This document shows, in pieces, positions 16,795-56,342 of a stretch of DNA of 64,000 nucleotides; position 1 is the first letter of the stretch; every line of letters starts with the position of its first letter. Made by a program: the position numbers and the translations under genes. The notes below the pieces were generated by a model that ran no database searches, had not been told where the DNA came from, and saw nothing but the letters and a program-made list of their open reading frames with translations. The stretch is from assembly GCA_030704615.1 (NCBI GenBank), contig CM060732.1, positions 58,404,001 to 58,468,000 of the forward strand, written 5' to 3'. This DNA is from Takakia lepidozioides. Lineage: Eukaryota > Plantae > Bryophyta.

Positions 16795-17189
16795 TTTCCC
16801 TCCATTTCTTGATCCTTTCTCTGGTTTTCTATTGGCTGTATCCGCTGTGACTGGATTTTAGATTTTATTTTCTTTAGTGGACTTTCCCTGCTGGATAGTC
16901 CACTAGGATCACACATGTGACAAGAATTTCGTTTTTCTGTACTTGCCGTTCGTTCTGTTTCCCTTTTTCCGTATTCATTAATGGGCCCGCCTTTCATCCC
17001 TTTTGACGGCCGTTCTTGTCCTCTTTCTTTATAACACCTGTTCTTGCACTTCCTTCTCAGCTGTGTGTCGCGCCCTGACCTCCACGTGTCTATTTTTAAA
17101 CTAATTTCCGTTTCTCTTCCGTCAGCCATTTTCTTGAAGTTATTATGCGTCCACCTGTCACTGATTCTATGGATCGTGTAACCCTAGTA

Positions 17190-17430
17190 GGCTGTGTTGA
17201 GCTGTGACAGGCTGTGTCATACTGTGTTACGCTGTGATAGGCTGTGATGCACTGTGGTAAGCTGTGATAGGCTGTGACACGCTGTGGTAGGTTGTGATAG
17301 GCTGTGTTGCGCCGGTGCTGGGCTGTGATAGGCTGTGTCACGTTGTGATGGGCTGTGATAGGTTGTGCTTTGCCTTGATGGGCTGTGATAGGCTGTGCTT
17401 TGCCTTGTTGGGCTGTGATAGGCTGTGTCA
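17190..17430. repeat. GGCTGTGATA-based minisatellite overlapping the integrase C-terminus
   Basis: 10/30-bp periodic units; translate as TAYHSPxxxx repeats in the integrase frame. Confidence 0.9.
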
Positions 17431-18844
17431 CGTTTGTTTTGCCCGCCCTGGTCATATATGCTCGGCCTAGCGACAAGTGCTCCATACTCCGTTCGTAACA
17501 CTGGTGCAGCCCGTGACTGCTCTTGCGGTTCAACATGCAAATCATGCTGCAAGGGTTTGTCATGGATACCACTGTACCCCTTCAACTTATTGGCATTGAC
17601 TCTTCCCAGCATTTCTTTGTTAATGGTTTGTAACATGGCGGTGTTGTTATCATACATCTTTTGTATGACATAAGGTCCTTTCCATGGTGATTTAAGCTTA
17701 GAAGCTTGAATCTTTCCTTTCTTCTGCAACCATAGAACCAAATCCCCCGTCTTAAAAGTCTTTAACTTGCCTTCATCAAACTGTTCCTTTCGCTTCATCT
17801 GAATTCTGGTCATATTATCAGCTGCATCAGCACGTACTTCTTCCACATGGTATAATTCATGTTTCCTGACCTTGATGGAGTCTTGCAATTCCATTCTCTT
17901 TCCCCACTCCGTTCTCATGGTAGGTAACAGGAATTCCACTGGAAGTAAGGCTTCCATACCATAAACTAATTGGAATGGTGTATACTTAGTGGTGACTTTA
18001 TATGAAGTCCTGTATGACCACAAAGCTGTCAGCAGCTTTGTATCCCAATCCGTTCTGTTTGCATTGACTATCTTAGCCAAGATAGTACATAGTATTTTGT
18101 TGGTAGCCTCTGCCTGCCCATTACCCTGTGGGTAATATGTTGTACTCTTTCTATGCACAATCATGAACTTTTTAGTCAACAACTCAATGGTCTCATTCAT
18201 GAAGTGACTTCCCTGATCACTGATAAATTCTAAGGGACAGCCAAATCGTGTAAATATGTTCTCGTACAGGAACCTTGCTGTGGACTTGGCTGTGTTGTCC
18301 CTCAAAGCTTTAGCTTCCACCCACTTTGTAGTATAATCAGTGGCTGTAATTATGTACCTGTTTGTGTATTCTTGGATGGTGGGTTAATTGGTCCAACAAA
18401 GTCTAGTCCCCATTTCTGAAATGGTTCCGTAGGCATTGTAGGATGCAAGGCCATCCTTCCAGATCTCTGCAAAGGTCCTAGCCTCTGACATTCATCACAC
18501 TTCTGACAATACTCGTGTACATCTTTGAACAAAGTAGGCCACCAGTATCCTGCGAGTAGTATCTTTCTACTGGTAGTCTCTTCTCCAAAATGACCTCCAG
18601 CCACTCCTTTATGAACTTCCGCCAAAACTTTATTTACTTCATGGTGGTACAAGCATCGTTTTAGTACTCCATCAGGTCCTAACTTATACATTCTGCTTCC
18701 TACCATAGTATAAGGTAAAGCTTTGATAGCGATTCTCTTCCTCTGCTCCTTACCATAACTAGGTGGGCACTGACCATGAGCAAGGTAGTATCTGATTGGC
18801 CACTGCCAATCTAACCAGTCATCTGCACTTCCCTGCACCTCCAC
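17217..18844 (-). CDS. Gypsy integrase (H2C2, rve, GPY), split by a frameshift near 18350
   Basis: VHKGVAGGHFG...CDEC, WGLDFVGP, ISDQGSHF, QAEATN, WKGPY. Confidence 0.93.
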
Positions 18845-18895
18845 TGCAAAGAGACTCGCATCTGGTAATTGATCATCTATTCCTGTGGCTGGTTC

Positions 18896-21301
18896 TCATG
18901 TTGACAATCGTGACAAATGATCCGCCACAAGATGCAGTCTCCCAGGCTTGTAAACAACCTCGAACTCAAACTCGTGCAAGATTATCAACCATCTTGCTAT
19001 TCTTCCGCTTATCAAAGGTTTGTTTACCAGGTATATCAGAGCCTGGTGATCCACATAGAACATAAACTTCTTGCCCAACAGGTAATGCCTGAATTTCTTC
19101 ACTGCATAGATCATTGCCAATGCTTCTCTTTCCGTTGTGCTATAGTTCCTTTCAGCACTGTTCATCAACCGGCTAGCATAGTACACAGGTGAATCTATAT
19201 TCCCTGTAACATTCTGGGCTAACACCGCTCCCAACGCTTCTCCTGATGCATCGCAGTGAACATGGAATACTACATGCCAATGAGGGTTAATCAGCACAGG
19301 TGTAGTTGTTACTGACAGTGTAAGTTCCTCAAATGCCTGTTGACATTCAGCTGTCCAGGCAAACACTGCATCTTTCTTCAGTAGTTTGCTCAATGGTGCT
19401 GCTATTTGTGCATACCTTTTGACAAATCTCCTGTAATAACTGGTTTGCCCAAGGAATCTTCGTAGACTTTTAACATTCACTGGTGGTGGAGAGGCTTTAA
19501 TGGACTCTGTCTTTCTGGGATCCACAAGGAGTCCCTTCTTACACACAATGTGTCCCAGAAGCACCCCTGAGTTCACACAGAAAGTACACTTCTCTGGATT
19601 CAGGCCCAGACCTCTCATCCTGCATCTGGCCAAACATAACTCCAATTTATGCAAGTGCTCACTTAGAGCTGTACACACTGAATCATCCAAGAATACCTGC
19701 ATGAAATCATCCAGATACTCATGAAAAGATTCACTTATCACTCTCTGAAAGGTCGCTGGTGCATTACAAAGTCCAAAGGGCATGACTTTGTATGCATAAG
19801 CCCCCCAGTCTGTGATGAAAGCTGTTTTCCCTTGGTCTTCTTCTGCCACTTGCACTTGATTATAACCACTGAAGCCATCCATGAATGAGTACATCTCATG
19901 GCCTGCCACAGTGTCTAATACTGCTTCTGTGAATGGCAAAGGGAAAGGATCTTTCTTCGTACAAGCATTCAGCTTCTTATAGTTCACACATACTCTTAGT
20001 TTGCCATTCTTCTTGGGAACTATAACAATGGGTGACAACCAAGTTGTATACTCTATTGGGTATATAAACTTAGCCTCAGCCAACTTCTTTATCTCTTCTC
20101 CAACCTTCTGTGCGTAGTTGGGATTCATTCTATACCTCGCCTGCTTGATTGGTACCGACCCTGGTTCCAGTTCAATCTTATGCTGACAGACTTCAGGTGG
20201 TATCCCCTTTAGATCCTCATAGCTCCAAGCAAATACATCTCTGTATTTGATGAACAAGCTTTTAGCTTCTTCGAAGAATTCCGGCTCCAAATCAGCTCCT
20301 ACTTTCACCATCCTCGGTTCCTCTTTAGTTCCCACATTTACTTCCCTCACCTGCTCATCAGCTGTGATTGTCCAACCAGTCACCACTTCATCCTGTAAGC
20401 TCACAGTGGCTGGTTCTTCTAGGATTTCTATTTCTTCTTCTCTTTCTTCATAGAAATGTGATGGGTAAATGCTGGTTTCCTCTTCAGTTGGTGTTGCTGT
20501 CACTACACCACAGCAGATACCTCTCAAACAACTTAGGCTTTCCAGCCGCATCTCTGCAACCTGCTCCCACTCTGGGTGTGCAGCAAATAGGGTAGCTTCC
20601 TGCTCCTCATCCAGTCCTCCTTTCCAGTCATACTCTCTGACTCCTCGAGGTCTTCTTGTAGCAGGTAATCTACTAGATTTCTTTGTGGTAATTTGTATCT
20701 CGTGTATCCCATTATGCACGGTTAGTAACTGAGAATTCCAGTCATGGAATACCCTGGCCTGTTTCAGCCAAGGCCGTCCCAATAATAAGGAGTAAGCCTC
20801 CATGACTTCATCCAGTTTCAACACAGTTACTGTGATCATAAAGATCATCTTCTGTATCTGTATCTTAACTCCTCTTATTAATCCCAATGGCTGTACACTT
20901 CTTTGATCTGCCATTATTACTGTAAATGGGGCTGGTTTCATGTTACTTAGACCAAGCTTCTTCCTTAATTGGTCTGTCATGATATTTACTCCAGAACCTC
21001 CATCTATCAGTACATCAGTTAGTTCTGTGCTTCCAATTCTCAATTGGATTACTGGCATAGAATCATCAAAGTCCATGACTGTTTCTCGCCCTTCCGGCTT
21101 CACATTATAACTGGTCACCTTGCTGTTCAGGTCTGTGTTTCCTGTCTCTTGGGCAATTCGATTGATTGCTTGATACAGCCTGTGCCTACAATAAGGTGCC
21201 ACAGCTAATAGCTGTCCAATGGTAATTTCTGCTTTGGTCTGGCATATTACTTCAGCCAAAGTCTCTTCATTACTTTGCATGTCTGCATCTTCTTTCTTCA
21301 T
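18896..21301 (-). CDS. Gypsy pol: aspartic protease, reverse transcriptase, RNase H
   Basis: LIDGGSG protease; MDGFSGY, MPFGLCNAPATFQ, FLDD RT motifs; HCDAS, TTERE, YVDH, VADHLSR RNase H motifs. Confidence 0.96.
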   Translation of the reverse strand: MKKEDADMQSNEETLAEVICQTKAEITIGQLLAVAPYCRHRLYQAINRIAQETGNTDLNSKVTSYNVKPEGRETVMDFDDSMPVIQLRIGSTELTDVLIDGGSGVNIMTDQLRKKLGLSNMKPAPFTVIMADQRSVQPLGLIRGVKIQIQKMIFMITVTVLKLDEVMEAYSLLLGRPWLKQARVFHDWNSQLLTVHNGIHEIQITTKKSSRLPATRRPRGVREYDWKGGLDEEQEATLFAAHPEWEQVAEMRLESLSCLRGICCGVVTATPTEEETSIYPSHFYEEREEEIEILEEPATVSLQDEVVTGWTITADEQVREVNVGTKEEPRMVKVGADLEPEFFEEAKSLFIKYRDVFAWSYEDLKGIPPEVCQHKIELEPGSVPIKQARYRMNPNYAQKVGEEIKKLAEAKFIYPIEYTTWLSPIVIVPKKNGKLRVCVNYKKLNACTKKDPFPLPFTEAVLDTVAGHEMYSFMDGFSGYNQVQVAEEDQGKTAFITDWGAYAYKVMPFGLCNAPATFQRVISESFHEYLDDFMQVFLDDSVCTALSEHLHKLELCLARCRMRGLGLNPEKCTFCVNSGVLLGHIVCKKGLLVDPRKTESIKASPPPVNVKSLRRFLGQTSYYRRFVKRYAQIAAPLSKLLKKDAVFAWTAECQQAFEELTLSVTTTPVLINPHWHVVFHVHCDASGEALGAVLAQNVTGNIDSPVYYASRLMNSAERNYSTTEREALAMIYAVKKFRHYLLGKKFMFYVDHQALIYLVNKPLISGRIARWLIILHEFEFEVVYKPGRLHLVADHLSRLST

Positions 21302-21380
21302 TTCTTCCTCACTCCTTCTTTTTCTCCATCCGAATCAGAGGAATCTGCCACAGGAATATCAGTACTCTTTTGCATTTCCC

Positions 21381-23565
21381 TTATAGTATCTGCCACTTTC
21401 TTGTGCAGTTCTTCTCATCTTTCCAAGTCTCTTCATCTTCAGGCATATCATTGCCACTTCCATTATCATCTTCTTCCTCTTCTACTGGAGGTATTAGTTT
21501 GGCTTTACTTCTTGTTACTATCATTGTACTTACTTCTGGTACAACACATGGCCTAACCATGTGAGCTGCCACCACTGGGCCCTCATTCACATGAGCTCTC
21601 ATCTCATTCTGGTGTCTTATCCAGAATGAACAGGCTGCCTTGCGATGTCCTGGCTGATTACAATAGTAACATAGCTCTTCACCATTAGGTCCTCGCCCTT
21701 GGTCTGTTCTTGGATTATTTCTATAATCCTGATTCCCGGGCTGGTAATTCCCCCTTGGATTACCCTGATAGTTGCCTCTGGAATTTCCTTGGTAATTCCC
21801 TCTTGAATTACCTCTCCCTTCTATGCCATTGTTATAACCACCAGACCTACCATAGTGGTCCTGATCATTGTTTCTTCTTGGCTGGGGCTGCACCTGATGC
21901 ACCCTTACTTGCCTAGGTTCTCTTGCAGCTGTCCTTCTGTTGTAGTAACAATTCTCAGTAGAATGGTTATCCATTTTACAGATAGTACAGTGTTTCTCCT
22001 TCATGTGGCATTCTGTGGTGGTATGGCCTTCATTCTGGCACTTTGCACACCATACACCCTTCCTCCAATATGTTGCAGCCTCTGTGGCATACTTCTTCAA
22101 GATTTCTTCCAATTTTTTTTCATAGTTATCCCTCTTCAACTTCTCCTTTCTCTTACTCTTTCTTTTTAGTTCTTGCTCTTCTTCTTCATCTGACTCATCC
22201 TCAGAGTCCTCATCTTTTTTTTCTCTCTCCTGAGCATTTCCAATTGCTCAATTCTGTTTGCAGTTTCAAATGCCTCCTCCACTGTATTATGGGGTAACAT
22301 ATCCACTTTCTTTTGCAACTCTGGTCTTAGTCCACTCACAAACCAAGTCTTCTGTAAACCGGGTGCTGGTACTGCAGCCAGCTTTTTCATCATCAATTCC
22401 ATCTTCTCCATATACTCTTCAACAGTTTCATGCTTCTTCTGCTTCAGCTGTTGTAAACTTCCATACACTTCATCCTCAGTTTTACTTGTCCTGAACCTAT
22501 TTCGAAATGCTGTATTCAAGCCATTCCAGGTTAGGAAATGATTATCAGGGAATATTGCATACCATTCACTTGCTTTCTTGATAAGTGAACAAGGAAACAG
22601 TCTCATCTTGGCATCATCGCCATTCTCATTGTTCACTATACACATGTGCTCAAATTGGCTAATGTGTATATCGAGATCCCCTTTTCCTGAATATATTGGA
22701 AAGGGTGGTTTTGCCCGTGTTGGTTGTAACGCCATCTGTGGCCCTACCTTCTGCCCACTGACAGGTGCTGGCACCCTTGCTGGTGCTGGTCCTTCTGGAC
22801 CTGTTGTTTTTGTGGTGGATCTTCCACCAAGTGGTGGCCTTTGAGCACTCCCTGCTTCTGGCCCCACGATATTCACATATTCCCAGCTTCAGTTGCACTA
22901 CTTCCCACACTCCCTGTCCCCCCAGAGCCAGATCCAGGCAGCCCGCCTGATCCCCCTGAGCCGACACCTTCGTTGGCCTGTGATCCAAGTGCTCCACTTG
23001 ATCCAGGTCCAACGGGTTGGGATGTCCTGGTTGTAGTCTCAACCTCAGCTGTTGGGTCTACTTCTTCATATTCTTCCTCTTCCAATTTCTTCTCTCTGTT
23101 TTCATCCTCCAAGTTTTGCCCTTGGGTTTCTTTTTCACTCATGTAACTCAACTGTAATGGTGTTGGAGAGTCTGAACTCTCCGTTGGCTCTGCCACATCC
23201 TCTTCTCCTTCTTCACCTTCTGCTTCAGAAACTAGAGTTCCTGCTTTTGGTGTTCCATGCCAACTCTTATCAAAGATTTCTGTCAAATCTTTTATCCAAG
23301 GATGTACCTCAGATCTTTCACCTCGTGATTGATCTTCTTCCTGTACCAATTCCCTTAATCTTTCTTGCAAAGAAACAGAAGGAGTGGCATCCAACTCTAG
23401 TTCTTCCGGTATAGGTGATGTACTCTTTGATCTTAATGGTGTGAGAGGTCCAGATGATTCCCCTATGTCTATTCCTCTCTCCCAAAGATATGGATAATTA
23501 GCTTTCAGATAGCTTTCTCTTTTTGCTGAACATCTCTGGCGTCTAGCTTCTCTTTCATCACTCAT
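21381..23565 (-). CDS. Gag (acidic/Gly-rich N-terminus, capsid, three CCHC knuckles), split by frameshifts
   Basis: MRLFPCSL..KASEWY and QQLKQKKHETVEEY capsid motifs; CAKCQNEGHTTTEC, CTICKMDNHSTENC, CYYCNQPGHRKAAC; RGNYQGN repeats. Confidence 0.9.
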
Positions 23566-23586
23566 GTCCCATGTCTTTCATTTCTT

Positions 23587-24276
23587 TTAATGTGGCAATA
23601 ACCAAAACTCTCTTCTGTAATATCTCTCGTATATGCCTGGGTTTCTTTCAAGCTTCAATGCACCCTTGGCTATACTTGAAGTCTCCGTTACCATATAACC
23701 ATATGGCAAACAAGTCTGAAAAGTTGTTGTGAGTTTGATCCACAAAATATCCTTTGGAATCCAATTCTTTACCAGTACAAGCTCTTCATGCATATGAGTA
23801 TAAACATTCACCTTTCTTTCTTCCCAGCCTTCAAACTCTACTCGCTTAATGGATAGCAATGCTATCACATAAACCAATGTTGGTAACCAACGTGCTCTTC
23901 CTCTACAGGCTACCTGATAAATCTTTATCACTCCTTTCTCCAGACCCCATTCCGGATCAGCATCATGCACTCGCTTAAGAATATTTTCTTTACAACCGTC
24001 TGGCAATTCCAAGAACCTTTGAAAGAATTGTTTGGACAATCTTTCTTCCTTCGTTCCACAGGGAATTTGATTCACTTCAAATTCTTTAATGGTCCAACCA
24101 CCATGATCCCACCAGATGCCTGTCACATCTGGTTGTTCATGACTCAGTTCCCCAGTATGGTCGCCAAATGTCGCACGGCAATTACTCACCCATCCCTTCG
24201 CTATTCGAGGCGGAAACTCCGAGATAGAAGAGTTGGAAATCTCTAAGTACTCAGCCCGCGCAGAACAATCAGTCAT
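23587..24276 (-). CDS. 229-aa ORF of unknown function upstream of gag, opening inside the 5' LTR
   Basis: Uninterrupted ORF across the LTR end and PBS, ending 22 nt before the gag-region ATG; no recognised motif. Confidence 0.5.
   Translation of the reverse strand: MTDCSARAEYLEISNSSISEFPPRIAKGWVSNCRATFGDHTGELSHEQPDVTGIWWDHGGWTIKEFEVNQIPCGTKEERLSKQFFQRFLELPDGCKENILKRVHDADPEWGLEKGVIKIYQVACRGRARWLPTLVYVIALLSIKRVEFEGWEERKVNVYTHMHEELVLVKNWIPKDILWIKLTTTFQTCLPYGYMVTETSSIAKGALKLERNPGIYERYYRREFWLLPH
24149..24166 (-). promoter_or_regulatory. Primer binding site, tRNA-Arg-like
   Basis: TGGCGACCATACTGGGGA on the minus strand, 2 nt after the LTR CA; resembles plant tRNA-Arg PBSs (TGGCGAC...). Confidence 0.75.
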
Positions 24277-25179
24277 GACCTACAACTAGTGTATCATGGG
24301 GGTGTTTCCTATTTGTTTCCCTTTTGGCATTCATGTTAGCTACCTTACCATTGATAATTAAGTATCAGTTTGCTTTATCAATCTATTGGATTCCATCAAC
24401 TCATCCATTCATTCCACAGCTTCACTCAGATCTCTCTACACAGTGTGATTGTATCGTAAAAGTATCCGATTATGATTTATCAGGTATCAGGCCGAAGCCA
24501 TTGTGTCTCTAATCTGCTCTACAATATCATTACAGCCTTGCATATAACAAGCATCTACTCATCATCTCTCTATCTTCACTTCCGTTCTTAATCTCTGCCC
24601 GATCCCCTCTCCTCCATGACCAAGAAGTCCTCCACCGAATGATATTCCCAAAATTCCCCGCTTCTCCCTTTATCTTCCTACCCGTGGTTCTAACCGTTTC
24701 CCTCACTAACCGTCGTCTGTGAACTAACATGTTCCCTTCGCAGGTGTTGTTCCCCACAGTCGTTCCCTGTCCTGCTCTCCGTTCCCTATGATCGTGACAG
24801 CTGTGTCAAGCTGTGACTGGCTGTGTGAAACTGTGACGAGCTGTGACTGGCTGTGCGACTCTGTTTGGCTGTGTGGCTGTGTCGGCTGTGTCGGGCTGTG
24901 TCGGCTGTGTGGCTGTGTCGGCTGTGACGACTGTGACGGGCTGTGTCGGCTGTGTCTGCTGTGATGACTGTAACGAGCTGTGTTGGCTGTGTCGGCTGTG
25001 ATGACTGTAACGGGCTGTGTTGGCTGTGTTGGCTGTGACTACTGTGACGGGCTGTGTAACCCCCCTCTACAGTGCGCTGCTGTCACCCCTAAGGCTCCTG
25101 TTGGTCTCAGTCTGTGCAAAAATTAAGGGTACCCTACAGATCCCGTTTAAGTGTCTAAGTCCCAGACAGTCCTCTAACA
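24169..25179 (-). repeat. 5' LTR (1011 bp)
   Basis: Matches 12029-12938; about 100 bp longer, mainly in the GGCTGTG minisatellite. Confidence 0.95.
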
Positions 25180-25745
25180 GGAGCCTCATCGTATATGGTC
25201 CGGGATGCATTGTCCGGGGCGTCATCATTCTCTTGTACCCTCTCTATCCAACCTCGGCCAACATCAGCGTCATCATGACCAGTCTCTTCCTCCTCCGCAT
25301 CTGCCTCGCCCCATGTAGATCCCCGACCATGATAGATACGTCTTCCTCTTGGCTGAGCATGCACAACCACCTTCCAATTTCCTGATTTGGAGAAAAAAAC
25401 TTGCTCCATGTCTGAAGGCCATGAAAAAGGTTCATCGGAGGGACGATGAGTAGACTCGAGCCTATCTGTATTGACGCGCATGAAACCACATTCGTCTTCC
25501 ACTATTGTTGCGGATGGCCCCACAAGATGTGGCTGGAACCACCTTGCCTTGAAGATAAGAGGCTGGTGCCTTGTATATTGAAGTTGGAGTATGCTCTCAA
25601 GCTCTCCAAAGTAGTTGAGTGTGCTCATGGTAGGTCGTGTATCTCCCCTGCCCCACACAGAATCTTGCCAATATGAGACACACAAGCCAGAATCAAATGT
25701 TGTTTTGCGCTTCATGTCAAGAGCACGAATGCAGAATCTTACGAG
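25180..25745 (-). mobile_element. CACTA (En/Spm) Tnp2-type transposase C-terminal fragment, DUF4216-like
   Basis: TFDSG...YFGELESILQLQY...FKARWF...DECGF..V...DEPF..P..MEQVFF...WKVV..AQPR pattern. Confidence 0.85.
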
Positions 25746-25837
25746 TGGATGTGGGTTCAAACCACCTTGTTGGTTGTTACAAAGGTGTCCACCTTCCTAC
25801 CGGAAGCCGGTTATGGACTAGGTAGCCGGGGAGGCGA

Positions 25838-29084: not shown

Positions 29085-30263
29085 ATGAGTATAGCAAAGT
29101 GGCAAAAAGTTGTGGAGCTGGAAGAGGAAAGTACAACGGTAGCCTCAAGCGCAAAGGGTAAGGAGGGGCCATGGAGTAAACTGCCCGAGGATGTGATGGA
29201 GAAAGTGTTTGCAAGCCTGCCTTTGCACACCCTTCTTCGAGTGCGTGCTGTTTGTCTTAGATGGAAACGTGTTATCTCTTCCTCTGCTTTTACAAAACTT
29301 TATGCACAAGTATCTCCCAAGAGTCATTGGTTTCTCATGTTCCCACAGGGGAAGCATCGGGGGAGGGTTGCAGCCTATGACTCAACCCTCAGCAAGTGGC
29401 ATGAGCTTCCGTTCAAGTTCCTACCTGTTGAGTTTGAGTGTGTGGCATCAGCAGGAGGGCTACTTTGTTGTAGGAGTACCCAGTCTCGTGTCTACCTTTT
29501 TGTTTGCAATCCGATGACAAGGACTTTCCGCAAACTTCCCCGCAAGCTGCAGCACCACCAGGATCCAGCCATTGGTATGGTCATTGACAGAGATACTGGA
29601 GGATACAAGGTGATAGTGGCTTTAGCTGTTGTAAGGAGGGCAAGTAATATTGGGTCTGTTGAGATCTATGATTCAACAAGCAAGCTTTGGGTTCTTAAAG
29701 ATCCCATACCTTCAGACTATTGTGTGAGAATGGTCACTCATCCCCACCCTACCTTTCACAAGGGGTCTTTGCATTATGGCCTCTCGATTGAGGGTGGCTT
29801 TATTTCGTATGATATAGAGCGCGAGGTGTGGAGTAAGGTTCAGGGATCACCCCTGATAAGACCGTCATATCTGGCTCCTCATCTTTTTGTGAGCCAAGGA
29901 CGGCTTTTTTTTGTGAGCCAAGGACGGCTTTTCTGTGTCATTCTTACAGGTGAAAATATTCGGGGCTTGGTTGTCAGGAGCGTGAAGATATTTGAGCTGC
30001 ATCAAACCAGCCCAGTGTTGTTGGAAGTGACCAGGATTCCGCCTGCTTTTGGGGAGTATCCACGATCTATCACAGTTGCTGGCCATATCAACTCAAATGT
30101 TATCTGTGTCTCTTCTCAGAATTGCCCTAGAATTTTATTGTACAATATGTCTGAAGACTCTTGGGTCCGAGTTGCTAACTTCCCAGATCGTAGTAATCAT
30201 CTTCCACGAGTAGGTCCTGAGTCAGCATTTGCATTTGAGCCTAGGCTGGATAGACTCGTCTAA
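29085..30263 (+). CDS. F-box protein with kelch-like/FBA beta-propeller C-terminus, single coding exon
   Basis: WSKLPEDVMEKVFASLP...LRVRAVCLRWK F-box; VASAGGLLC, VCNPMT, YKVIV, VEIYDS motifs; FEPRL end typical of plant F-box/kelch proteins. Confidence 0.95.
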   Translation: MSIAKWQKVVELEEESTTVASSAKGKEGPWSKLPEDVMEKVFASLPLHTLLRVRAVCLRWKRVISSSAFTKLYAQVSPKSHWFLMFPQGKHRGRVAAYDSTLSKWHELPFKFLPVEFECVASAGGLLCCRSTQSRVYLFVCNPMTRTFRKLPRKLQHHQDPAIGMVIDRDTGGYKVIVALAVVRRASNIGSVEIYDSTSKLWVLKDPIPSDYCVRMVTHPHPTFHKGSLHYGLSIEGGFISYDIEREVWSKVQGSPLIRPSYLAPHLFVSQGRLFFVSQGRLFCVILTGENIRGLVVRSVKIFELHQTSPVLLEVTRIPPAFGEYPRSITVAGHINSNVICVSSQNCPRILLYNMSEDSWVRVANFPDRSNHLPRVGPESAFAFEPRLDRLV

Positions 30264-40978: not shown

Positions 40979-43900
40979 TGTTGAAACACTCAGCTGTTCA
41001 TATTCAACTACATAGAACACCTGAGGTGAGGGTACATATATAGTGTTTGTCACATAGATAGATAGAGAAAGAGATAGAGCAGGACCACATGGTCACCACA
41101 TGGGCCTTATCGCTAACTATAATGGAGCTGCAATTACTAAGGCATATGGTAGCCTGCCACTATCTAGAATCTTGGAGCAGTGCATTCACTTATGCCTGAT
41201 CTATCGGCATACTACATGGGTGTGTTAATTCCAATACCTAAGTGATCTAAATAGCTTCATAGTATTAGTGTATGTCCTCCAGTATCCCCTTTGCCAGATT
41301 GCTGAAGACTTGTCTATAGTGGTATGAATCTGGGATTGAGAGTTCTATGGACTATCCTACAGGAGCATACTGTTCTACTGGTTATACTTTACCCTATCCT
41401 ATTTCTGATCCAGCAAGTTGACTCTATGATGCAACATGGTCTAAGTCTACTTCTCCTTTTAGTATTTTCTCTCTAATGAAGTGGTAATGCACCTCTATGT
41501 GCTTAGTACGCACGTGTGAAACATTGGAGTGTTCCCCATTTTGATAGCACTGGAATTATCACACCAAAGTTGAGTTGCCTTACCAATGAGGAAGCCAAGT
41601 TCCTGAGTAAGAGTCTGCAACCACATCCATTCTTTGGTACCTTCAGTTATGGCTCGATACTCAGCCTCGGTTGACGACAAGGATACGGATGGCTGTCTCT
41701 TGCTCGACCATGTTACAGGTGATCCCCCAAGTTGGAACACAAATCCAGAGGTAGATCGTCTTGTTTCTTGATCACCTGCCCAATTTGAGTCCACAAACCC
41801 GTCCAAACCTATTCCTCCTTCCGCGTAAAACATCAATCCAAAATCCATGGTTCCCTTTAGGTAGCGGAATATCCTTTTGACTGCCTCCATGTGAGACTTT
41901 TGAGGTGCTGACATAAATCTACTTACCACCCTTACAGCGTAGCAAATGTCTGGCCGTGTATTTGTCTAATAGATCAACTTTCCGACCATTTTTTGATACA
42001 AAGCTCATCTGCTCGCTCCTCTCCCATGTCAGCAATTAACTTCAAGTTCTCAACCATGGGAGTTGGGCTTGTGTTGCATTCACTAAGACCTAGTTCCTTG
42101 AGCATGGCTTGGATATACCATCTCCGCGTCAGAAAAATCCCATTCGAGAAGTACTTGAATTCTATGTGTAGAAAACCACCCAGTTGTGACATTCTGAACT
42201 TCTTGACAAGCTGCTGGGTTAACCACTCAATCTTTTCATTGTGATTCCCCGTCAAGAGCAAGTCATCCACGTATATAATTAGAATAATCAGCCTATCTCC
42301 TTCTCGGATGTAGTAGAGATTATGGTCTGCATTGCTTCTCTTGAGGCCTTGCTCCCGGGGAAATTTATCTATTTCTTCATACCACGCTCTCGGTGCTTGT
42401 TTCAGTCCATATAGGGCTTTAGCAAGCTTGCAAACCTTCCCTTAGTGCCCACGAACCTCAAAGCCCTTGGGCTGCAACATGTAGACCTCCTCCTTGAGGC
42501 TTCCATTGAGAAAAGCCGTCTTGACATCAAGGTGCGACAATTTCCAATTATTTTTCGCGGCAAGAGCAATCAATGTCCTTAGTGTGCCCCATTTCATCAC
42601 TGGGGTGAATGTCTCTTCATAATCAATTCCCTCCCCTTGCTCATAGCCGCGAGTGACAAGTCTGGCCTTGTGCTTGATATGATCTCCATCTGCATATTTC
42701 TTCTCCTTGAACACGCACTTAGAAGAAATTGGACGTTTTCCTGGATGCAAATCAACAAGCTCCCACGTATTGTTTTCTTGTATAGAGTCCATCTCCTCTT
42801 GCATGGTTTCTCCAAATTGAATGGAGCACTGCCTGCTCAAAGAGGTAGGTTCCTCTGCATTTTCCAACATAGCAACGTAATCCTCTAGTCTTCGTGGTAT
42901 TCTTCCGTTCCCGCATAGGCAACCTTCGAATTTGAGGAGCGAGTGGAGCAGGTGGCTGATCAAGCAAGACAGCTTCACTAGAGTTTTCACTTGAAGTGTT
43001 TCCAAAAATAGATGTATCGGAGAGTATATAAGGTGACTTGGAATCAGTTGAGAAGGGTACTTGATGTCTCCGACGAGGATTGCAAAGAATCATGAGACTG
43101 AGAGGGTGCAGGACTAGCTGGTAGATCAGGAGGAGCACTGGGTCTTTGATCAACTTCTCGGAATATGAGGGTGGTTGTGTCATGATTGCACGATGCCCTT
43201 TGGTCGGGTGCACAACCAACATGAGACTCATCGAACTTAACATCCCTCGAAACAAGTATACGTCTAATTGAGGATGATAGCACCGAAAGCCTTTAGACTC
43301 CAGATCGTATCCTATGAAGGCACATTTGACAGCTCTCGCTTCCAATTTCTCTTCCAAAACTCCGGAGATGACGAAGGTATGGTCGCTTCCCCGTGTGAGT
43401 CGCTGAAAAGGAGTTACTCCTGAATTGGCTCGTGTCGGTGATCTATTGATGAGGTAGTTCGCAGTGTTTACTACCTCGGCCCAAAGATAGTGGGTGCATC
43501 TGCTGTGGGTCATGCTACAAGCCCGCTCCATGATCGTCCGAATCTTTCTTTCGGGCGACTCCGTTGGAGTGTGAAGTCCTTGCCTCGGTAAGCTGTCGTA
43601 GAATGCCATGCTTATCAAGATAGTCCTGAAATTCACAAGACATAAACCCCCCCCCCATCTGTGCGTTGGGTCTAAATGGATTTTCGAAAGTGGTTACATT
43701 CTATGAAAATTTCGAAAATAGGAGAAGGCTTCACTCTTTTCCTTGAGAAAATAGACCCACGTGAAGCGACTGAAGTCGTCGGTAAAAGTAATGAAGTATC
43801 TTTTTCCTCCTTTTGATGGAACTGGCAGTGGCCCACAGAGATCAGAGTGAATAAGTTGTAAGATTCCAGTGGCTCTGGAGTTGCTGGATTTAGGAACTCT

Positions 43901-45938
43901 CTCTCGACTTTGTTTGCCAAGTTGGCACCCTTCATAGGCAGTTTCGAAAATGGGCAGGTATGGAAGTCCAGTGGCCAACTCGTTCGAAGTCAAGTGATCA
44001 TGAACTCCTCGGTGGTTCAGGTGACCCAATCGCTTATGCCAGAGTTTGACTATATCAGATAGTGCGCCTAGAAGAATGTCATCAGATGATTCGAGAGATA
44101 GCACTTCATGACCTTTAGCTATTGTATCTAGCCTGTACAATCCATTGTAAGCATCTCTGATTCCTCTGTCCGTAATTCTTCCACTTCTATCGATGAGAAG
44201 ACACTTCCTGGAATCAAAGAGAGCAATGTGTCCATTGTCAACGAGAGTTCCTACAGAAATCAAATTTTTCTTAAGCCCATGCACTTAAAGAACATTCTCG
44301 AGAGTCTTTATTTTCCCATTAGGGAAGTGAAGAAGTGGGACGAAGTGAGACTCTCCTCCTGCGGATTTGACACTTTGAGACTCTTCAGAAGGACTCGCCT
44401 TGATTTCATCTAATAGCTCTGCGTTTCCGTGACGTGCTTGGAGGCACCTGTGTCGAGGTACCAAGGTTCTCCCTTCATTTCTGCAGACAGGGCAGCCAAA
44501 GTTTCTTCGAAGAGCTCGGCCGGGCTGACCTCATCATGAGAATGCTCTTCTTTTTCTATGCAATGGATTCATCGTCCTTGGGATCCTCCAGTCTGAGTAA
44601 ACGGCTCCTTTCCGGGGCGCTGACGCCAATAATGCTTTCCACACTTGTGGCAAACACCTCAAAAATTGTGGTTGCGTGTGGAGAGTTGTGGTTAGATGAT
44701 CCAGTCCTCCTCCGATTGTTCAGCAAAGTGTGAAATCGGACCAGCAGCGCTTCTTCGTTCGTTAAAACTGGCGACTCTTGTGAATGGCAAGTCGAGTCTG
44801 CTCAAGCAGCAGTCGTCCAGTAAGCTCTTCAAGTGTGGGCATATATTTTTCATTGCTGATCATGACTTGAACAAACGGAGTGTAGCTCTCCTGGGAGAGC
44901 ATTGATGACTTGCTCGACAATGATTTCGTCGGCAGGAGTTGCATCGATCTCTGCCATCTGATTCAAGAGGCTCTTCACGGTCCACCATGAATTTTTCCAC
45001 CGAAGCTGCTTCCTCCATCTTCCTCCATCTAAATTCAGCTGGCTAAATTTGTTGCGAATCATAAGACGTTGTGCGTTGTTTTTGGTGTCATAGAGACCCT
45101 GCAGAAGTTCCCAGAACTCCTTTGGATCAGTGACCTTCACAATGTAAGGAATGATGTGGTCCCTGACGGATAACTTTAGTATGGCCAACGCCTTGCGCTT
45201 CAGTTTCTTCATCGTATTTTCATCAAGGTCAGCCTTGTCCTCGGCAGCTGTTGCGTCGGTAGTAAGCTCAAGGAGGTCCAAGAGGTCCTCTTTTTCCAAC
45301 ACAGTCTGCATCTTAAATTTCAACAAGGGATAGTTGCTTACACCATCCAACTTGTTAGACTCGGAAATGGAATATTCAAGCGTAGAAGCAGCCATGATGA
45401 TGCAATCACTACAGTCACTTGTCTAGGAGAGCTCTATGATGGAAGAATAAGCAGGTAGGATCAGAAGGAGAAAGAATAATACAAAAAACAAGATGATAGT
45501 AGCAAGGTGAAAGAACAAGATAATGAGGGTCAAATTTTTCTCACCACATGCGTACTCTGCAGGAAAGTCGAAGTACACGCTATATTAATATCGAATCTAT
45601 AGATCTTGTAACCCGGGTGTTACCCCCTAACAACGCTATGATACCATGTTGAAACACTCAGCCGTTCATATTCAACTACATAGAACACTGGAGGTGAGGG
45701 TACATATATAGTGTTTGTCACATAGATAGATAGAGAAAGAGATAGAGCAGGCCCACATGGGCCTTATCGCTAACTATAACGGAGCTGCAATTACTTAGGC
45801 ATATCGTAGCCAACCACTATCTAGAATCTTGGAGCGGTGCATTCACTTATGCCTGATCTATCGGCATACTACATCGATGTGTTAATTCCAATACCTAAGT
45901 GATCTAAATAGCTTCATAGTAATAGTGTATGTCCTCCG
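40979..45938 (-). mobile_element. Degenerate Ty1/copia LTR retrotransposon
   Basis: LTRs 40979-41281 and 45647-45938; PBS TGGTATCATAGC (tRNA-iMet-like) at 45635-45646; gag, WHKRLGH, IHSDLCGP, KARLV, DVKTAFLNG, YVDD, SSTEAEY in copia order; many frameshifts; no matching TSD. Confidence 0.95.
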
Positions 45939-48150: not shown

Positions 48151-49504
48151 CTGCCAACACAAACCCACAAAACGTCCCTTTTCACTGCATTTCTCACTGT
48201 TTCAAATGAATAAAACTAGTTTAGTTTTTTCCTTACTGTTCTACTTTGTCCCATTGCCCTTGTCCTTGTGGGCGTTTTTTAAGTTTTTTTCTCCGCAGAC
48301 GCTATAAAGTACCATTTGATTGGGGATTCCTCCTTGCCCTACGGGCTGTAGCAGGTCACTTGATGACCTGCTGATCCGGTCCTACCTACCTGTCAGGCCA
48401 AAGGAAGAGACAAGAGACTAGGCTGACCCACCAGCTGAAGGCAAAGGTGGGCAGCTTACTGGTCGGCAAGGGGAGAGGCATCTGCAGGCCCGCTGTCAAA
48501 TCCCCACCCCTATATGCCCTGCTGCCCGCTGACCCCTATTGGGGATAAAAAAGATTGGACTCTAGCATGGACGGCGATGATACTGCCCGTGGTCCGCGGA
48601 TCGGAGAGCCCGCCCTGTTCCCGGGCTGCCCGGTCCCCCGCTTCCCTATTCCAATTCCGTGGTCGGAAATAGGGCTGAAGGTGGGGAGCGTGAGGAGATT
48701 TGACTGGCAGCATGCGGACGACTTGCCTTAAGCTGCTTGTAGCCTCGGGCCTGGTGCATCGATGGAGTGCTACTTTTCTCAGAGTAGGAGGACGCGCTTT
48801 CTGTAAAAGGAAAGGCAGAGTGATGGAATGAATGTGGGCCGAATGCTGACCCAATTCGTGCGAGCATGCAGGGCACATAGACGTGTTTGCAAGCAGGTGG
48901 AGGATATGGCTTTGATTGTGGGCCCTCGGAAGAAGAGAAGTTACGGTGGGCTGTGGAGTAAGAGAAGAGCAGAGATGGAGTGGTGGGTCCAGATGTGGGA
49001 GGGTGGTGGGGCCGCCCAAAACTCAGCGGAGCTCTGTGCTATACAAGAGACCGGAAATGGTGTAGTTTGCACACTTGTACCCGAGTACTTACCCTGCGTT
49101 GGGAGTTGCATCCACATTGGGACCGGGGAGGAACATTGCTGACTTTGAATCCGAGCTTTCAGCTCGACACGGTAAGCGAGGGGGTACTGTGTTGAAGTCG
49201 TCATTGTGACCTGAAAATCTCAGTCCAGAAGTCTTGCTCGGGTTGAGTGGTGATTCTGTCAGACCTAAACCCTGTAACATGGGCCCGAGGAATCGGAACC
49301 TGCGGGCGTGGGGGCTGTTGTATTTCTTTTCAACGTGCCTGCAGACAACGGGGGTTCAACAATGGCTGCATTGCGTTGCATTATTCTGTGCCGTTCAGAT
49401 GGAGGCAGAGGAGCAGCTGTTCATACTCTTTGTCTCTCTTTCTTCAGGAATTCCCTGTTTGAACTCTTGAATCTGGTTGGAAATGCAGCTAGCGAAGAGT
49501 TACA

Positions 49505-51770
49505 ATGGCCCAAGTGGATCCTCGTCAGGCTTCTCCCGAGGCCTTGAAGACGATCTCGAAGTATTTCTCGTTAGCATTTGTTGACAGCAATTTCTTCACC
49601 GCCGCATATGACGCGCTCAAGGAGCTGGGTTTCACAAGGTACAGAGACCACAAATCTCTATGAATTTGAGTATGCGTAGCTCACATTTTACAGGCAACAG
49701 ATTCCGAGTCCGGAGTGGTGTTATACTAGCTGAACTGGGTTTTAGCTGTGAGGGTTTTTGTTTCGTCAATGTTTATTGACCTTGAAATTGGAAAACGACA
49801 GGGGCACCACCATTGCTTTGGTGAATACATGCCGGGACGAACTTGCACGACCTATTTCTCACTTTTTTGATGAGGTCTGTTATAACCACAACTCCACACT
49901 GGGTACCATATCTAATCTACATCAGGCACAATGAAGCCTTCCAGGATCATATCTGTCTGTCATATGCATGAGTCCCCCTTGAATGATGTGCTCTATCTGT
50001 TTGCTCAGTCTATCAATCAGAAATCTGGTATCTTACTCTTGGAAATTCCCTCCAGACAAAAGTGCTTCTGAGATGGGTGGAGGGTTTTTGCTATGCAGAA
50101 ATATGGCCATTCCTTCAATCTCTCAGGCATTTCTGGTATAATGACTGCTGGAACGTTGGGTTTCTTGGCTGCCACGTCACATGCTCCTTATAATCCTGAT
50201 GGAAGGGACAAATGTAAGTGCTTAATAGCTGGTATTGATATGTCTTATACACTGCTAGTACAGTGGTTGGGATGCGGAGTAATCTCAATTGTATAACCTG
50301 GTCTCCCACTTGAAAGCAAAATTCTTACTCACATCAAGCCCTTCCAACTGCCAATGTAAGCGGCTCTGACCTCACTGTAATGTGCTGTGTTGCAGATGTA
50401 TTTTTCGCATCAACACACACTGCAGTTGATGAGAAGGGTATGTGCGTTTGTGTCAGTCTTTGTTGTTCTGTTACTTCAATTAACCCAGTAGTGGCTTTCC
50501 TTGGGGAGATCTTGCAGTTTTTACTGGCTCAAAAGCATGCCTGTTCCCGACGTTCAGGTGCAGAGGGTGTTGTGCTCAGAGAAGGGCAAAAGGACGTCTC
50601 AAAAGCATGTGGAGCTATTGAGGCAATCAAGGCTGAAATTGACTCTGGAGTCACACAGGATGGCTCCATACGGGATGATAATATCGAGTATGATACCTTG
50701 AAAAGAAAGATTTTCTCAAAGGTACAAGGTTCTGCATGGTGATCGCTGTGCCCCTCCTGATCAGATTGTCTCATTCAAGTTGTCCTTCGGCCACATTTAA
50801 ATGTCGGTGAAGGTTAATTTGCAGGTTTAATCTCTTGTCTATGCAGGATACTATGCAGTCCTGGAGATAATATATGATATAATCGAAGTCCATGCAATTT
50901 TCTGATTTGTAATTCATAATCTGAAATGGAAATGGCAGTAGTTAATGGATTGCGACTGAGTTGGCTGCTTCATCCGCAACCATCCTGTCTGTCGTCACTT
51001 GAGTGGTTCATTGACTGGAGTACCTTACTTGCGCTGATGACTGCAGAGTCCTGGTGCTAGCCCAACCAATTTTGAACTGACAAAAATTACAGCTGAGGTA
51101 TGGACACAAACTAATCTGCCTTAGGTGCTAAGTTGATGAAAAATCCTTTCTCAAGCCACACCTCCAGAAAAGTGTCACATGCAAGTGAAATTGATGGTTT
51201 GAATTGAGTTATGCAGGTTATCACCAGTGATCTCGAAGATTTGATCTCTAAGACTGTTGACCCAGCTAATGCTGATTATGCCGTGCTCACTGGAATTCAA
51301 ATTCATGCTGGAGTAGAGGGAGGCACAAGGACCCCAGATGCTTTCATTGATTATATAGCACCTGGTAAGGGCTTCTGCTAATTTCTCCTCGTGTCCCCAG
51401 CAGTATATGTAAAAGAGCTGTTTTCCTGAGCATGAATGTATAACCATACTGGTGTGTCGTTTGGAGTGGTTTGAACTACTGAGCATGTGACTAACAAATT
51501 TGGTGTATGTCCGATTTGCTTGAGCCCTTCACTAAGCAAAACTCACAGGACAAAAGACTCGTCATCCATGGTGTGGAATGGCGTAGAAAGGTCTGTTCTG
51601 TCTGAATAAGAACTTTGACATTGAGCACTGAACGAGAGAATTTCTGTCGGCTATCTGAGAGTTTCACTGACTTGTAATTGCCCACTACAGTGGCTTCATA
51701 TGCCGTGATTGGAGGTACAAAATATGACCTCAAAACTGACGGCAAAAAATACTTCGTCGAGAAGGCCTGA
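49505..51770 (+). CDS. LCIB: LCIB-family (theta-type carbonic anhydrase-like) protein, 8 exons, 268 aa
   Basis: Exons 49505-49638, 49802-49874, 50099-50213, 50396-50437, 50558-50721, 51047-51097, 51217-51364, 51691-51770 (807 nt, all GT-AG, phases consistent). Motifs GFT..TIALVNTCRDE, SHAP, YVFFASTH, KACGA, ITSDLEDLI.KTVDP..ADYAVLTGIQIH match Chlamydomonas LCIB as remembered. Confidence 0.92.
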
Positions 51771-53051: not shown

Positions 53052-56000
53052 ATGCAAAGTTACTCTCTCTCCTTGTGTACTGATGTTCGGGTACATTTGA
53101 TGCTTTGGCCATCCTCCCACAAGAGCAGTAGCTCAAAAGGGGTTTGGCAAAAGAAGTGGAGAAGCAGTATTGCCATGAGCCTCTTAAAAGGTGTGGCAAA
53201 ATGCTTTGGCAAAAGAGTTGGAGAAGGAGCACCCATGGCAGCGCAAACAGTTCGCATGGTGCCTGTGGAGAACATACCACCCTTCTCTGCACGTTTCGAA
53301 AGCATACGGCCGTGCCCTTGCACGCCTCCCCGAGGATTTACTGTTTTGAAGGTTGTCCCTGGGCCGGAAGCGTCGATAAGGTGGGGACTGTACGAGAAGC
53401 TTGGGATTGAATACATTTCAAATCCCAGACTATGGTGGGACAATCGAGGCAATAAGGTAAGATCAAGCAATGCTACATAAGAAGGCAACAAAGACTCTCT
53501 CGCAAACTAATAGTAATCCTATGCTTCTCTTTGTCTCCCCTTAGCCTGTGATGTGATTCTTCATTGTGTATGCAAGCAGAAAGACACATTTCGCTATTTT
53601 TTCCATTCTCTGGAGGTTGAAACTCTATGACAGACCCTCCGAGGGTTAATATCCAGCGTTGCGAGATCATACTTGCAGCCAACGGGTGCAAGCACATACA
53701 CACTTCCCCTTACGAATCGGATTTTTTAGTCGCCACCAATTCAACTCGGTTTTTAGTAGTCAGGGGCCTGGTGTTTGCTATGTAATTTATGGTTTGTCTT
53801 TGTCAGCCACTTGCAACCAGGGTAAGGATACTCATTATTGTAGAGGCAGGGAGGGAAGATCCATCTCAGAGGACCTGCCTTGAAGCACCAGAGTGTGAAA
53901 GAGGCACTGTGCATTGATAACTACAAGAAACCTGCATGGGTAGATGGTCAATCGGAGAAGCTTGAAGCATCAAGTTGCAAGTCCTGGTGGGGGGGGAGGG
54001 TTAGTCTTGGGGAAGATTCCAGTATGCCCATTCTTGCTCATTTGTAGATGCAGATGTTGGTAGCATGGGGGTGGTTTACTAAGTGGTCTTGTTATACATT
54101 TCAACAATGGAAACAAGTAGGCACTCATTGGGCAGAGTTCTGCTACTGAACGAAGGGATAGTTAATTCTCTTGATTCCTACAGAAATTGAGCAGAAACTT
54201 CGTATGTGTGGGGGTTCATAGGAGATTATTCCCAACAGAGTAGCCTGAAGAGATGTTTTATGTTGTAGCTTTCTTCTAGGGTCAAGTTGAGCACAAAATC
54301 GGTACTTGGTATTCCCTGCATAGAAAGAAAATATATGTTGTGGCCAGTCCGCATGAAGAGACCTTTCTTCAAGATAGATTTTGCATCAAGGTTGGTAACT
54401 TACGAGGTTTTACTCATGCAGGATGGCGGGGTTGAATCAGGCACAGTTTTTTGAGTCAGGCACCCCCACCATGACAATTGCTTTTGAAAGAGGATTGAGA
54501 GAGGTAGTCGACAAGAACTCTTCTGGCACTTGTGGGGATGTGAGGAGACTAAACAAGGCAGGACAATTGAAAGAGGCGCTGCACATTTTAAACCGTGGAG
54601 GCATTTTGGCAGACTCCAAAACTTATGTCTTTCTCTTGCAAGAGTGCATCAAGATGAAAGCCCTAGCAGAGGGAAAGCAGGTACATGCCCATATTATCCA
54701 AAGTGGATTCAAGCCAAACATCTTTCTACTCAACACACTCATCAACATGCACGCCAAGTGTGGAAGTGTGGTGGATGCACGCCTAGTGTTTGACAAAATG
54801 CCTGAACGAGATGTGATTACATGGACTACAATGATGGGAGGATATGCCAATCATGGGTATGGTAGAGAGGCCTTAGAGATTTACAAGCAAATGATACAGG
54901 AAGGCGTAACACCCAATAGAGTTACCTTCATTTGTGCTCTGAAGGCTTGTGTTAGTCTGGTTGCCCTGGAAAAGGGCATAGAGATCCACGCTAACATCAT
55001 AAAAGCTGGAATTACTCCAGATATCATTCTGGAGAACACCCTCATTGATATGTATGCCAAATGTGGGAGCATGAAGGATGCACATTGTGTGTTTGACAAA
55101 ATGACTCGTCGGAATGTGGTCTCTTGGAGTGCAATGGTTACAGGATATGCTCACCATGGGTGTTGTAGGGAGGCTTTTGAGACATATAAGCAAATGATAC
55201 AGGAAGGGGTGTTGCCCAACAATATCACACTCACTTCTGTTCTCAAGGCATGTGCCAACGTGGCAGCCCTGGAAAAGGGCATGGAGGTCCATGCGGACAT
55301 CAGCAAAGCTGGAATTGTGCCAGATACCATCTTGGAGACCGCCCTCGTGGACATGTATGCTAAATGTGGGAGCATGAAGGATGCACATCAAGTCTTCAAC
55401 AACATGGCTCAGCGAAACGTGGTCTCATGGAGTGCGCTGATTGCAGGTTATGCACAACATGGGTGTGCTATGGAAGCCATGCAACTATTTGAACAAATGC
55501 AGAAGGAATCCTTGAAGCCAGACGGTATCACCTTTATATGTCTCCTATCTGCTTGTAGCCATGTGGGTCTAGTGGATGAAGCTTGTCACTACTTTCACTC
55601 TATGAGTCAGGATTATGACCTTAATCCTACAGTGGAGCATTTTGGCTGCATGGTGGACCTTCTTGGTCGTGCAGGGCGGTTGGATGAAGCAGCGGACTTC
55701 ATCAACAATATGCCTCTTCAACCAGGTGTTGCGGTCTGGGGGGCCTTGCTTGGAGCTTGCAGAATTCATGGGAATGTGGAGGTGGCAGAACATGCAGCCA
55801 AAAGCCTTCTCAAGCTGGATCCCAAGGACGTGTCAACATATGTACTACTATCAAATATCTATGCTGCAGCTGGCAGGTGGGAGGATACTGCAAAGGTGAG
55901 AAAATTGATGAAGGACAGAGGTGTTAGAAAGGACCCAGGTCGCTGCTGCATTGAGGTTAACAACCTGGTTCATACATTTGGTGTAGCTGACAAATCGCAT

Positions 56001-56342
56001 CCACAAATCAATGAAATCCATGCTGAGCTGAACAGATTACTAGGGCAGATGAAGGAGGGGGGTTACATGCCTGACGCCCATTTTGTGTTGCATGATGTGG
56101 AGGCAGGGGGAAAGGAATTTTCTCTTTGTTACCACAGTGAGAAGCTGGCCATTGCTTTTGGACTGATCAGCACGGTCCCTGGGAAGCCTCTTCGTGTCAT
56201 CAAGAACCTTCGGGGGTGTGGTGACTGCCACCTGGCCACCAAGTTCATCTCGAGGATTGCTGCGCGACCAATTGTTGTACGCGATGCTAACCGTTTTCAC
56301 CACTTCCAAGATGGAGTTTGTTCTTGTGGGGACTACTGGTGA
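53052..56342 (+). CDS. PLS-class PPR RNA-editing factor with E1-E2-DYW; predicted 5' exons add an OSB-type PDF motif
   Basis: 54423-56342: about 11 PLS motifs, PG box (KDPGRCCIEV), HSEK...CGDCH, terminal DYW. Exons 53052-53456 and 53844-53986 join 54422 in frame via GT-AG introns; start codon uncertain. The PPR-DYW part is secure, the 5' exons less so. Confidence 0.88.

Follow-up and report, generated by a model that had tools for sequence, protein, structure and literature searches.

A short LCIB-type carbonic anhydrase gene in Takakia lepidozioides and a land-plant subfamily predicted to lack the chloroplast transit peptide

Gene structure at the locus

The moss Takakia lepidozioides carries a gene of the LCIB (theta/beta-like) family of zinc carbonic anhydrases in a 64,000-nt stretch of its genome (GenBank assembly GCA_030704615.1, contig CM060732.1, positions 58,404,001 to 58,468,000 of the forward strand), the whole of which is referred to here as the window and supplies the coordinates used below. 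Rebuilt from the raw 64-kb window, the gene occupies positions 49505–51770 of the plus strand in eight exons, with a coding sequence of 807 nt that specifies a protein of 268 aa. All seven introns, which range in length from 119 to 326 nt, have GT-AG borders. An initial annotation of this DNA had described a complete gene of eight exons and 268 aa with Cys, His, and Cys zinc-ligand positions, and the rebuilding returned the same number of exons, the same protein length, and the same motifs.

The first coding exon (49505–49638, 134 nt) opens with the ATG at 49505–49507 and encodes residues 1–44 plus two nucleotides of the next codon. It is followed by exon 2 (49802–49874, 73 nt), where the NTCRDELARP motif supplies the zinc ligand Cys55 together with Asp57 and Arg61; by exon 3 (50099–50213, 115 nt), which holds a segment running from FNLSG to TSHAP with the invariant His97; by exon 4 (50396–50437, 42 nt), with STHTAVDE and the zinc ligand His115; and by exon 5 (50558–50721, 164 nt), with KACGAI and the zinc ligand Cys139. 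Exon 6 (51047–51097) measures 51 nt and its counterpart in the liverwort Calypogeia fissa 60 nt, the intron phases being equal. The DYAVLTGIQIHAG segment lies in exon 7 (51217–51364, 148 nt), and exon 8 (51691–51770, 80 nt) closes with a TGA stop at 51768–51770. All of these features are on the plus strand.

Two additions to this model were considered and rejected. A ninth exon at 51549–51590, read in another frame, would have to be in phase 0, which the phase-1 end of exon 7 does not allow, and residues at that place occur in no homologue. Intron 4 (50438–50557) is a stop-free, in-frame stretch of 120 nt whose retention would add 40 residues and keep the frame. As coding sequence it was rejected, since the Pfam profile has no space for it and the 40 residues occur in no homologue.

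Upstream of the ATG, a strong polypyrimidine/CAG acceptor at 49447 ends a putative intron of the 5′ untranslated region (UTR) at 49171–49447 on the plus strand, the donor being cut between ACG and GTAAGC at 49170/49171 and the acceptor reading TTTCTTCAG before a G. This intron is read from the sequence only. Acceptor-like sites are found at a similar distance 5′ of the ATG in the Calypogeia locus (L003) and in locus L004. An upstream open reading frame (ORF) of 61 codons (49362–49547), in another frame, overlaps the main ATG; as it starts inside the putative UTR intron, it would be lost if that intron is spliced.

Family membership and active-site residues

For the searches, the exons of the spliced model were taken one at a time, and the joined 268-aa protein was used only for local alignment, hidden Markov model (HMM) scoring, and trees. 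Three exons gave collinear matches to the Pfam profile PF18599 (LCIB_C_CA): exon 3 at 27.6 bits (profile positions 48–79), exon 5 at 22.6 bits (positions 98–152), and exon 7 at 27.2 bits (positions 176–208), with exons 3 and 7 each above the 25-bit gathering score and exon 5 slightly below it. Exon 3 alone also matched LCIB in the PDB (5k5w, E 2.8e-4) and the solved Chlamydomonas LCIC, and exon 5 alone found no match in the PDB. The joined model scored 473.6 bits against an HMM of land-plant homologues. The profile of this land-plant clade aligned full-length with the solved Chlamydomonas LCIB (CrLCIB; 5k5w, 222 and 169 bits) and with LCIC (5b5x), at E values of 1e-48 to 1e-65.

In the 268-aa product, NTCRDELARP lies at residues 53–62, STHTAV at 113–118, and KACGAI at 137–142. 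The alignment columns of their ligands Cys55, His115, and Cys139 show no variation from plants to bacteria, and the three residues line up with their counterparts in CrLCIB and PtLCIB4. Asp57, Arg61, and His97 are likewise present, and the C-R-D-E and His columns of alignment A1, including that of the zinc ligand His115, are invariant. Overall, the protein has 35 of the 36 residues that plants and bacteria share without exception, as well as 110 of the 118 that never vary among land plants, and its substitutions are conservative. Agreement of this degree lies well outside what chance would produce. His97, in the SHAP segment, corresponds to the position mutated in the H88A variant of PtLCIB4, and the roles assumed here for the Asp, Arg, and His residues are those that Jin et al. 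2016 reportedly assigned to them. With its Cys-His-Cys zinc positions and its catalytic Asp, Arg, and His, the protein is a member of the LCIB/theta-type carbonic anhydrase family. It ends about 12 residues past the domain. The residue after the zinc-ligand Cys is an arginine (Arg56, of CRDE), as in CrLCIB and in all of the plant, algal, and bacterial relatives aligned; PtLCIB4 has a serine at this position, and the PDB holds its S47R mutant.

Short orthologues in other land plants

A search of a representative library with the stop-free stretch formed by exon 4, intron 4, and exon 5 returned one full-length match, KAJ7542757.1 of the lycophyte Diphasiastrum complanatum. Further relatives were obtained by word searches seeded with this protein and with alignments, and they comprise a second D. 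complanatum isoform of 269 aa, two 267-aa copies from the leafy liverwort Calypogeia fissa (CAM6085623.1 and CAM6091767.1), and three transcript-derived proteins of 267 aa (P0011–P0013, from Logan SRR33208217, Logan SRR2518103, and JGI metatranscriptome 3300052651) that are probably of bryophyte origin. None of the papers searched mentions the run or metatranscriptome accessions of these three. The window’s own protein was absent from the searched protein collection. The window protein is 64–68% identical to each of these short relatives (64–65% for those of Diphasiastrum and Calypogeia), and such identity across lineages as distant as liverwort and lycophyte shows that the gene is under constraint. 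Nothing published on the Diphasiastrum protein KAJ7542757.1 or on the two Calypogeia proteins was found in the literature searched.

The exon plan is common to these genes as well. In Calypogeia the coding exons measure 134, 73, 115, 42, 164, 60, 139, and 77 nt, to be set against 134, 73, 115, 42, 164, 51, 148, and 80 nt in the window, and all seven intron positions and phases coincide. Diphasiastrum has the same eight blocks, with a first coding exon of 134 nt as in the window. The two Calypogeia copies (assembly GCA_965154635.1) lie on different large contigs and are at least 90% identical; the genes beside them, among which are those for a hexapeptide-repeat protein and for a SUV3 helicase, are not syntenic with those of the window. 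In Diphasiastrum, comparison of P0005 with P0010 revealed an isoform of 256 aa whose counterpart of exon 5 is shortened at its end by 13 residues (VEYGILKKKLFAK), which resembles the effect of an alternative donor or of differing annotation.

A start without a leader

All members of the short land-plant clade begin with Met and five to eight further residues, followed by the motif QASxxAL(E/K)TI(S/H)K(Y/N)F. In all six members the zinc-ligand Cys lies 53–55 residues from the start, and there are four to seven acidic residues in the first 40; the window protein itself has 54 residues before this Cys and five acidic residues among its first 40. Algal relatives, by comparison, have 117–192 residues before the zinc-ligand Cys and only 0–1 acidic residues in the first 40, as is usual for transit peptides. 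Many of the closest algal relatives also have a hydrophobic, anchor-like segment after the transit peptide, and this too is gone from the window protein, which has no hydrophobic stretch outside the domain and an acidic N-terminus unlike the algal leaders. The chloroplast transit peptide that marks the plastid LCIB of the CO2-concentrating mechanism (CCM), of the Chlamydomonas and hornwort type, is found neither in the window protein nor in its five clade relatives.

The residues of exon 1 align with the first helices of the bacterial homologues and with those of the CrLCIB crystal chain from about residues 23–32, and exon 1 is therefore domain rather than leader. The bacterial homologues start at about residues 11–13 of the window protein, in agreement with the distance of about 12 residues that the initial annotation gave between the ATG and the conserved domain. 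That annotation had also noted an in-frame TAG (49490–49492) after the acceptor at 49447; it is present, and a second in-frame stop, a TGA at 49460–49462, likewise lies on the plus strand between the acceptor and the ATG. Among orthologous mRNA contigs, the same ATG is preceded by an in-frame stop at a distance of 18 codons in L002 and of 5 codons in L005, and a third contig (L001) has a 70-nt leader without an upstream ATG. In-frame stops are also found in the genomic sequences, 12 codons 5′ of the ATG in Calypogeia and 15 codons in Diphasiastrum. The claim that the transit peptide is absent is thus borne out by the upstream stops, by the start common to the clade, and by the orthologous mRNAs, and no transcript that adds a presequence was seen among the latter, where L002 and L005 have their stops before the ATG. 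On these comparisons, the short N-terminus is a real feature and not an annotation slip.

Phylogenetic position

A maximum-likelihood tree of 49 sequences was computed under LG+C20+F+G4, its land-plant members being drawn from lineages other than hornworts. It supported the eukaryotic sequences at 100/97, the streptophytes at 96/88, and the short land-plant clade at 100/100 on a long stem (1.2). Within this clade, the lycophyte lies outside a group (100/95) in which the liverwort is joined by the window and by the three transcript-derived sequences, the latter three forming a subgroup with the window at 98/61. This branching mirrors the species tree with the window and the transcript-derived trio as mosses, an agreement that is compatible with such a placement without being proof of it.

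When scored with a profile of the land-plant sequences only, the next best proteins were those of Closterium spp. (Zygnematophyceae) and Coleochaete scutata, at 230–259 bits; bacterial proteins reached at most 196 bits and CrLCIB 169 bits. The grouping expected from the species tree, which unites land plants with Closterium, gave p = 0.055 in the approximately unbiased (AU) test, which leaves either orthology with fast change after loss of the leader or an older duplication. Within the streptophyte-alga clade, one EukProt transcriptome sequence (P0145, 274 aa, a complete ORF) starts 51 residues before the zinc-ligand Cys. This short protein raises the possibility that the leader was lost, or a leaderless isoform gained, on more than one occasion.

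Genomic surroundings

Downstream of the LCIB gene by 1.3 kb lies a gene for a PPR-DYW RNA-editing factor (53052–56342, plus strand), which includes an ORF of 639 aa at 54423–56342. An intronless gene for a beta-propeller protein of the F-box/KIB1 type is found at 29085–30263 on the plus strand. Look-ups of the exact proteins of the intronless PPR-DYW ORF (54423–56339) and of the F-box ORF (29085–30260) returned no record for either. The remaining window consists mainly of the remains of mobile elements, among them an ORF with integrase and PHD at the left end (6–1175, plus strand), a long, retroelement-like run of minus-strand ORFs at 17100–25800, and a remnant of a copia-type gag/integrase at 42400–45400 on the minus strand. 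Rfam and tRNA scans of the 64-kb window for taxon-specific RNAs found nothing.

Interpretation and alternatives

Taken together, it is likely that the window holds an intact gene for an LCIB-family zinc carbonic anhydrase, belonging to a land-plant subfamily whose members, of about 267–269 residues, no longer have an N-terminal chloroplast transit peptide and descend vertically from an LCIB of streptophyte algae. The gene would represent an unstudied branch of the LCIB family, and its product is probably cytosolic. The protein would fold like the solved LCIB and hold its zinc by Cys55, His115, and Cys139, with Asp57 and Arg61 alongside. From a place outside the stroma, the cytosol being the most likely, it could interconvert CO2 and bicarbonate, for example by converting CO2 to bicarbonate that is then used in cytosolic carboxylation or passed on to the plastid. 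It is also possible, if doubtful, that one LCIB lineage lost both the transit peptide and the anchor-like segment before the living lineages of land plants split, and so became a cytosolic theta-carbonic anhydrase of which scattered copies survive in mosses, leafy liverworts, and lycopods, with only the plastid form being kept in hornworts.

Several points weigh against a leaderless cytosolic enzyme. Proteins without a cleavable leader can reach the plastid envelope. The arginine of CRDE is reportedly tied to inactivity in vitro, as CrLCIB is said to be inactive in such assays and the S47R change is said to have silenced PtLCIB4, and activity may therefore need activation. The Calypogeia locus, whose closest in-frame stop sits just 5′ of an acceptor-like site, leaves room, taken alone, for an upstream coding exon. 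Both expression and the first exon in the host genome would follow from comparison with relatives, and the position of hornwort LCIB relative to the short clade is taken from the literature.

Of the other explanations, one would keep the protein at the chloroplast by non-canonical targeting, with peripheral docking at the envelope or an internal signal in place of a cleavable transit peptide. LCIB of the hornwort Anthoceros agrestis forms a thin envelope ring that overlaps TIC40, which would make envelope association a family trait in land plants, and the clade-specific N-terminal motif (QASxxALETISKYF) and C-terminal tail, both missing in bacteria, are also in its favor. It is nevertheless rather unlikely, given the transit peptide predicted for the hornwort protein and given that the long leaders of the nearest algal relatives, many of them with a hydrophobic segment, and the anchor are missing in the window protein. 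That the protein is instead a non-catalytic relative, acting as a sensor of CO2 or bicarbonate or as a structural or regulatory subunit, is unlikely. Arg56, the reported inactivity of CrLCIB in vitro, and the S47R mutant of PtLCIB4 could be read in this way, but the zinc and catalytic positions are all invariant across plants, algae, and bacteria, and an arginine after the zinc-ligand Cys is the norm for the family.

A leader might also have been overlooked, in a missed 5′ coding exon or in a minor isoform made from an alternative promoter or splice form. The probable UTR intron that ends at 49447, a weak, in-phase, acceptor-like CAG at 49526–49528, and the order of stop and acceptor-like site in Calypogeia could all be accommodated by such an exon. 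The two in-frame stops after the strong acceptor tell against it, however, as do the single ATG used by three orthologous mRNA contigs and by the annotations of two genomes (two of the mRNAs having upstream stops) and the start common to both Diphasiastrum isoforms, and we regard it as highly improbable. Finally, the bacterial-like length and the absent leader could have come with a gene transferred horizontally from bacteria, where homologues of 236–274 aa begin at the same point and are 32–39% identical. This origin was rejected as having next to no likelihood: the clade sits within the eukaryotes and together with the streptophyte algae, Closterium and Coleochaete outscore the bacteria on the land-plant profile, and seven spliceosomal introns are common to the window and the liverwort. 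A plant gene whose leader was lost accordingly remains the preferred reading.

Significance

Papers on the hornwort CCM have based evolutionary scenarios and crop-engineering arguments on an LCIB restricted to hornworts. The liverwort and lycophyte genes by themselves place the family beyond that group, and together with the window gene they indicate that an LCIB lineage persisted far more widely, without a plastid leader. This corrects the presence/absence matrix from which a biophysical CCM in the first land plants is inferred. It also offers what may be a testable case of an algal CCM enzyme with a changed compartment in land plants, as well as a naturally leaderless plant theta-carbonic anhydrase, so far a predicted one, for engineering. 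If the leader was indeed lost ancestrally, land plants without a pyrenoid would keep an unnoticed, ancestral piece of CO2 handling in a new compartment. The weight of these points is tempered by a genome paper of 2020 that already contained LCIB-like sequences from non-angiosperm land plants.

Comparison with known LCIB proteins

LCIB and LCIC of Chlamydomonas (5k5w and 5b5x), which form a stromal complex of the CCM, resemble the window protein in their PF18599 domain, in the CRDE, H, and C-G motifs, and in an insertion before the last strands. They differ in the leader: the window protein has no transit peptide and only 54 residues before the zinc-ligand Cys, whereas chlorophyte-type relatives have 117–127 and their leaders are nearly free of acidic residues. 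The window protein also belongs to a different clade. CrLCIB is also said to extend into a long C-terminal tail, which was cut back to obtain crystals.

The bacterial LCIB_C_CA proteins (of Nitrospirota, Bacteroidota, and cyanobacteria; PDB 6kfs and 9vzj) are of similar size, have no leader, and possess the same invariant residues. They differ from the window protein in being only 32–39% identical to it, in forming a separate clade, and in being without the loop before the last strands and without the N- and C-terminal motifs of the land-plant proteins.

The nearest relatives outside the short clade, to which they are sister at 96/88, are the LCIBs of Closterium spp. and Coleochaete scutata (EP00245_P013615). 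These are 42–48% identical to the Diphasiastrum protein and differ in their length of 380–438 aa, in having 139–193 residues before the zinc-ligand Cys, and in starts that resemble transit peptides. Most of the Closterium-type proteins, namely those closest to the land-plant clade (P0131, P0132, P0134, P0135, P0137, P0141, P0142, and P0146), have a 19-residue hydrophobic stretch with Kyte-Doolittle values of 1.75–2.2, which lies between the transit-peptide-like start and the carbonic anhydrase domain and is absent in Coleochaete-type and chlorophyte-type LCIBs. This stretch could be a membrane anchor, and if hornwort LCIB shares it, the location of that protein at the envelope membrane would be explained.

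As for land plants, Li et al. 2020 and Robison et al. 2024 reported LCIB in no lineage except hornworts. Zhang et al. 2020, in their work on the Anthoceros angustus genome, had LCIB/C-like sequences of non-angiosperm land plants from 1KP transcriptomes, the text naming no species. The initial annotation’s conditional proposal that the family extends to another land-plant lineage is supported by the Calypogeia fissa and Diphasiastrum genes, and its presence outside hornworts had already been stated by Zhang et al. 2020. No paper pairing LCIB with Takakia was found in the literature searched, and among the searched papers that mention LCIB together with lycophytes none described a leaderless land-plant form, so that the undescribed element appears to be the loss of the leader and not the presence of the gene outside hornworts.

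The only studied land-plant LCIB is that of A. agrestis (AagrBONN Sc2ySwM_368.2612), the single homologue in that species, which has conserved active-site residues, as in the window, and forms its ring at the chloroplast envelope. A 2025 preprint lists it with a predicted chloroplast transit peptide (Supplemental Table 1) and finds that it clusters with algal, not land-plant, proteins. The window protein, by contrast, has no leader, the hornwort side of this comparison being taken from the papers only. The single LCIB of A. agrestis has a predicted transit peptide, and the window gene therefore departs from the usual hornwort type; on that published prediction, the hornwort protein does not share the short N-terminus of the window protein. 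The closest counterparts of the window gene are instead the hypothetical proteins of Diphasiastrum and Calypogeia, which come from other species and which, by their equal length, start, and exon plan, are the orthologues of the Takakia gene.

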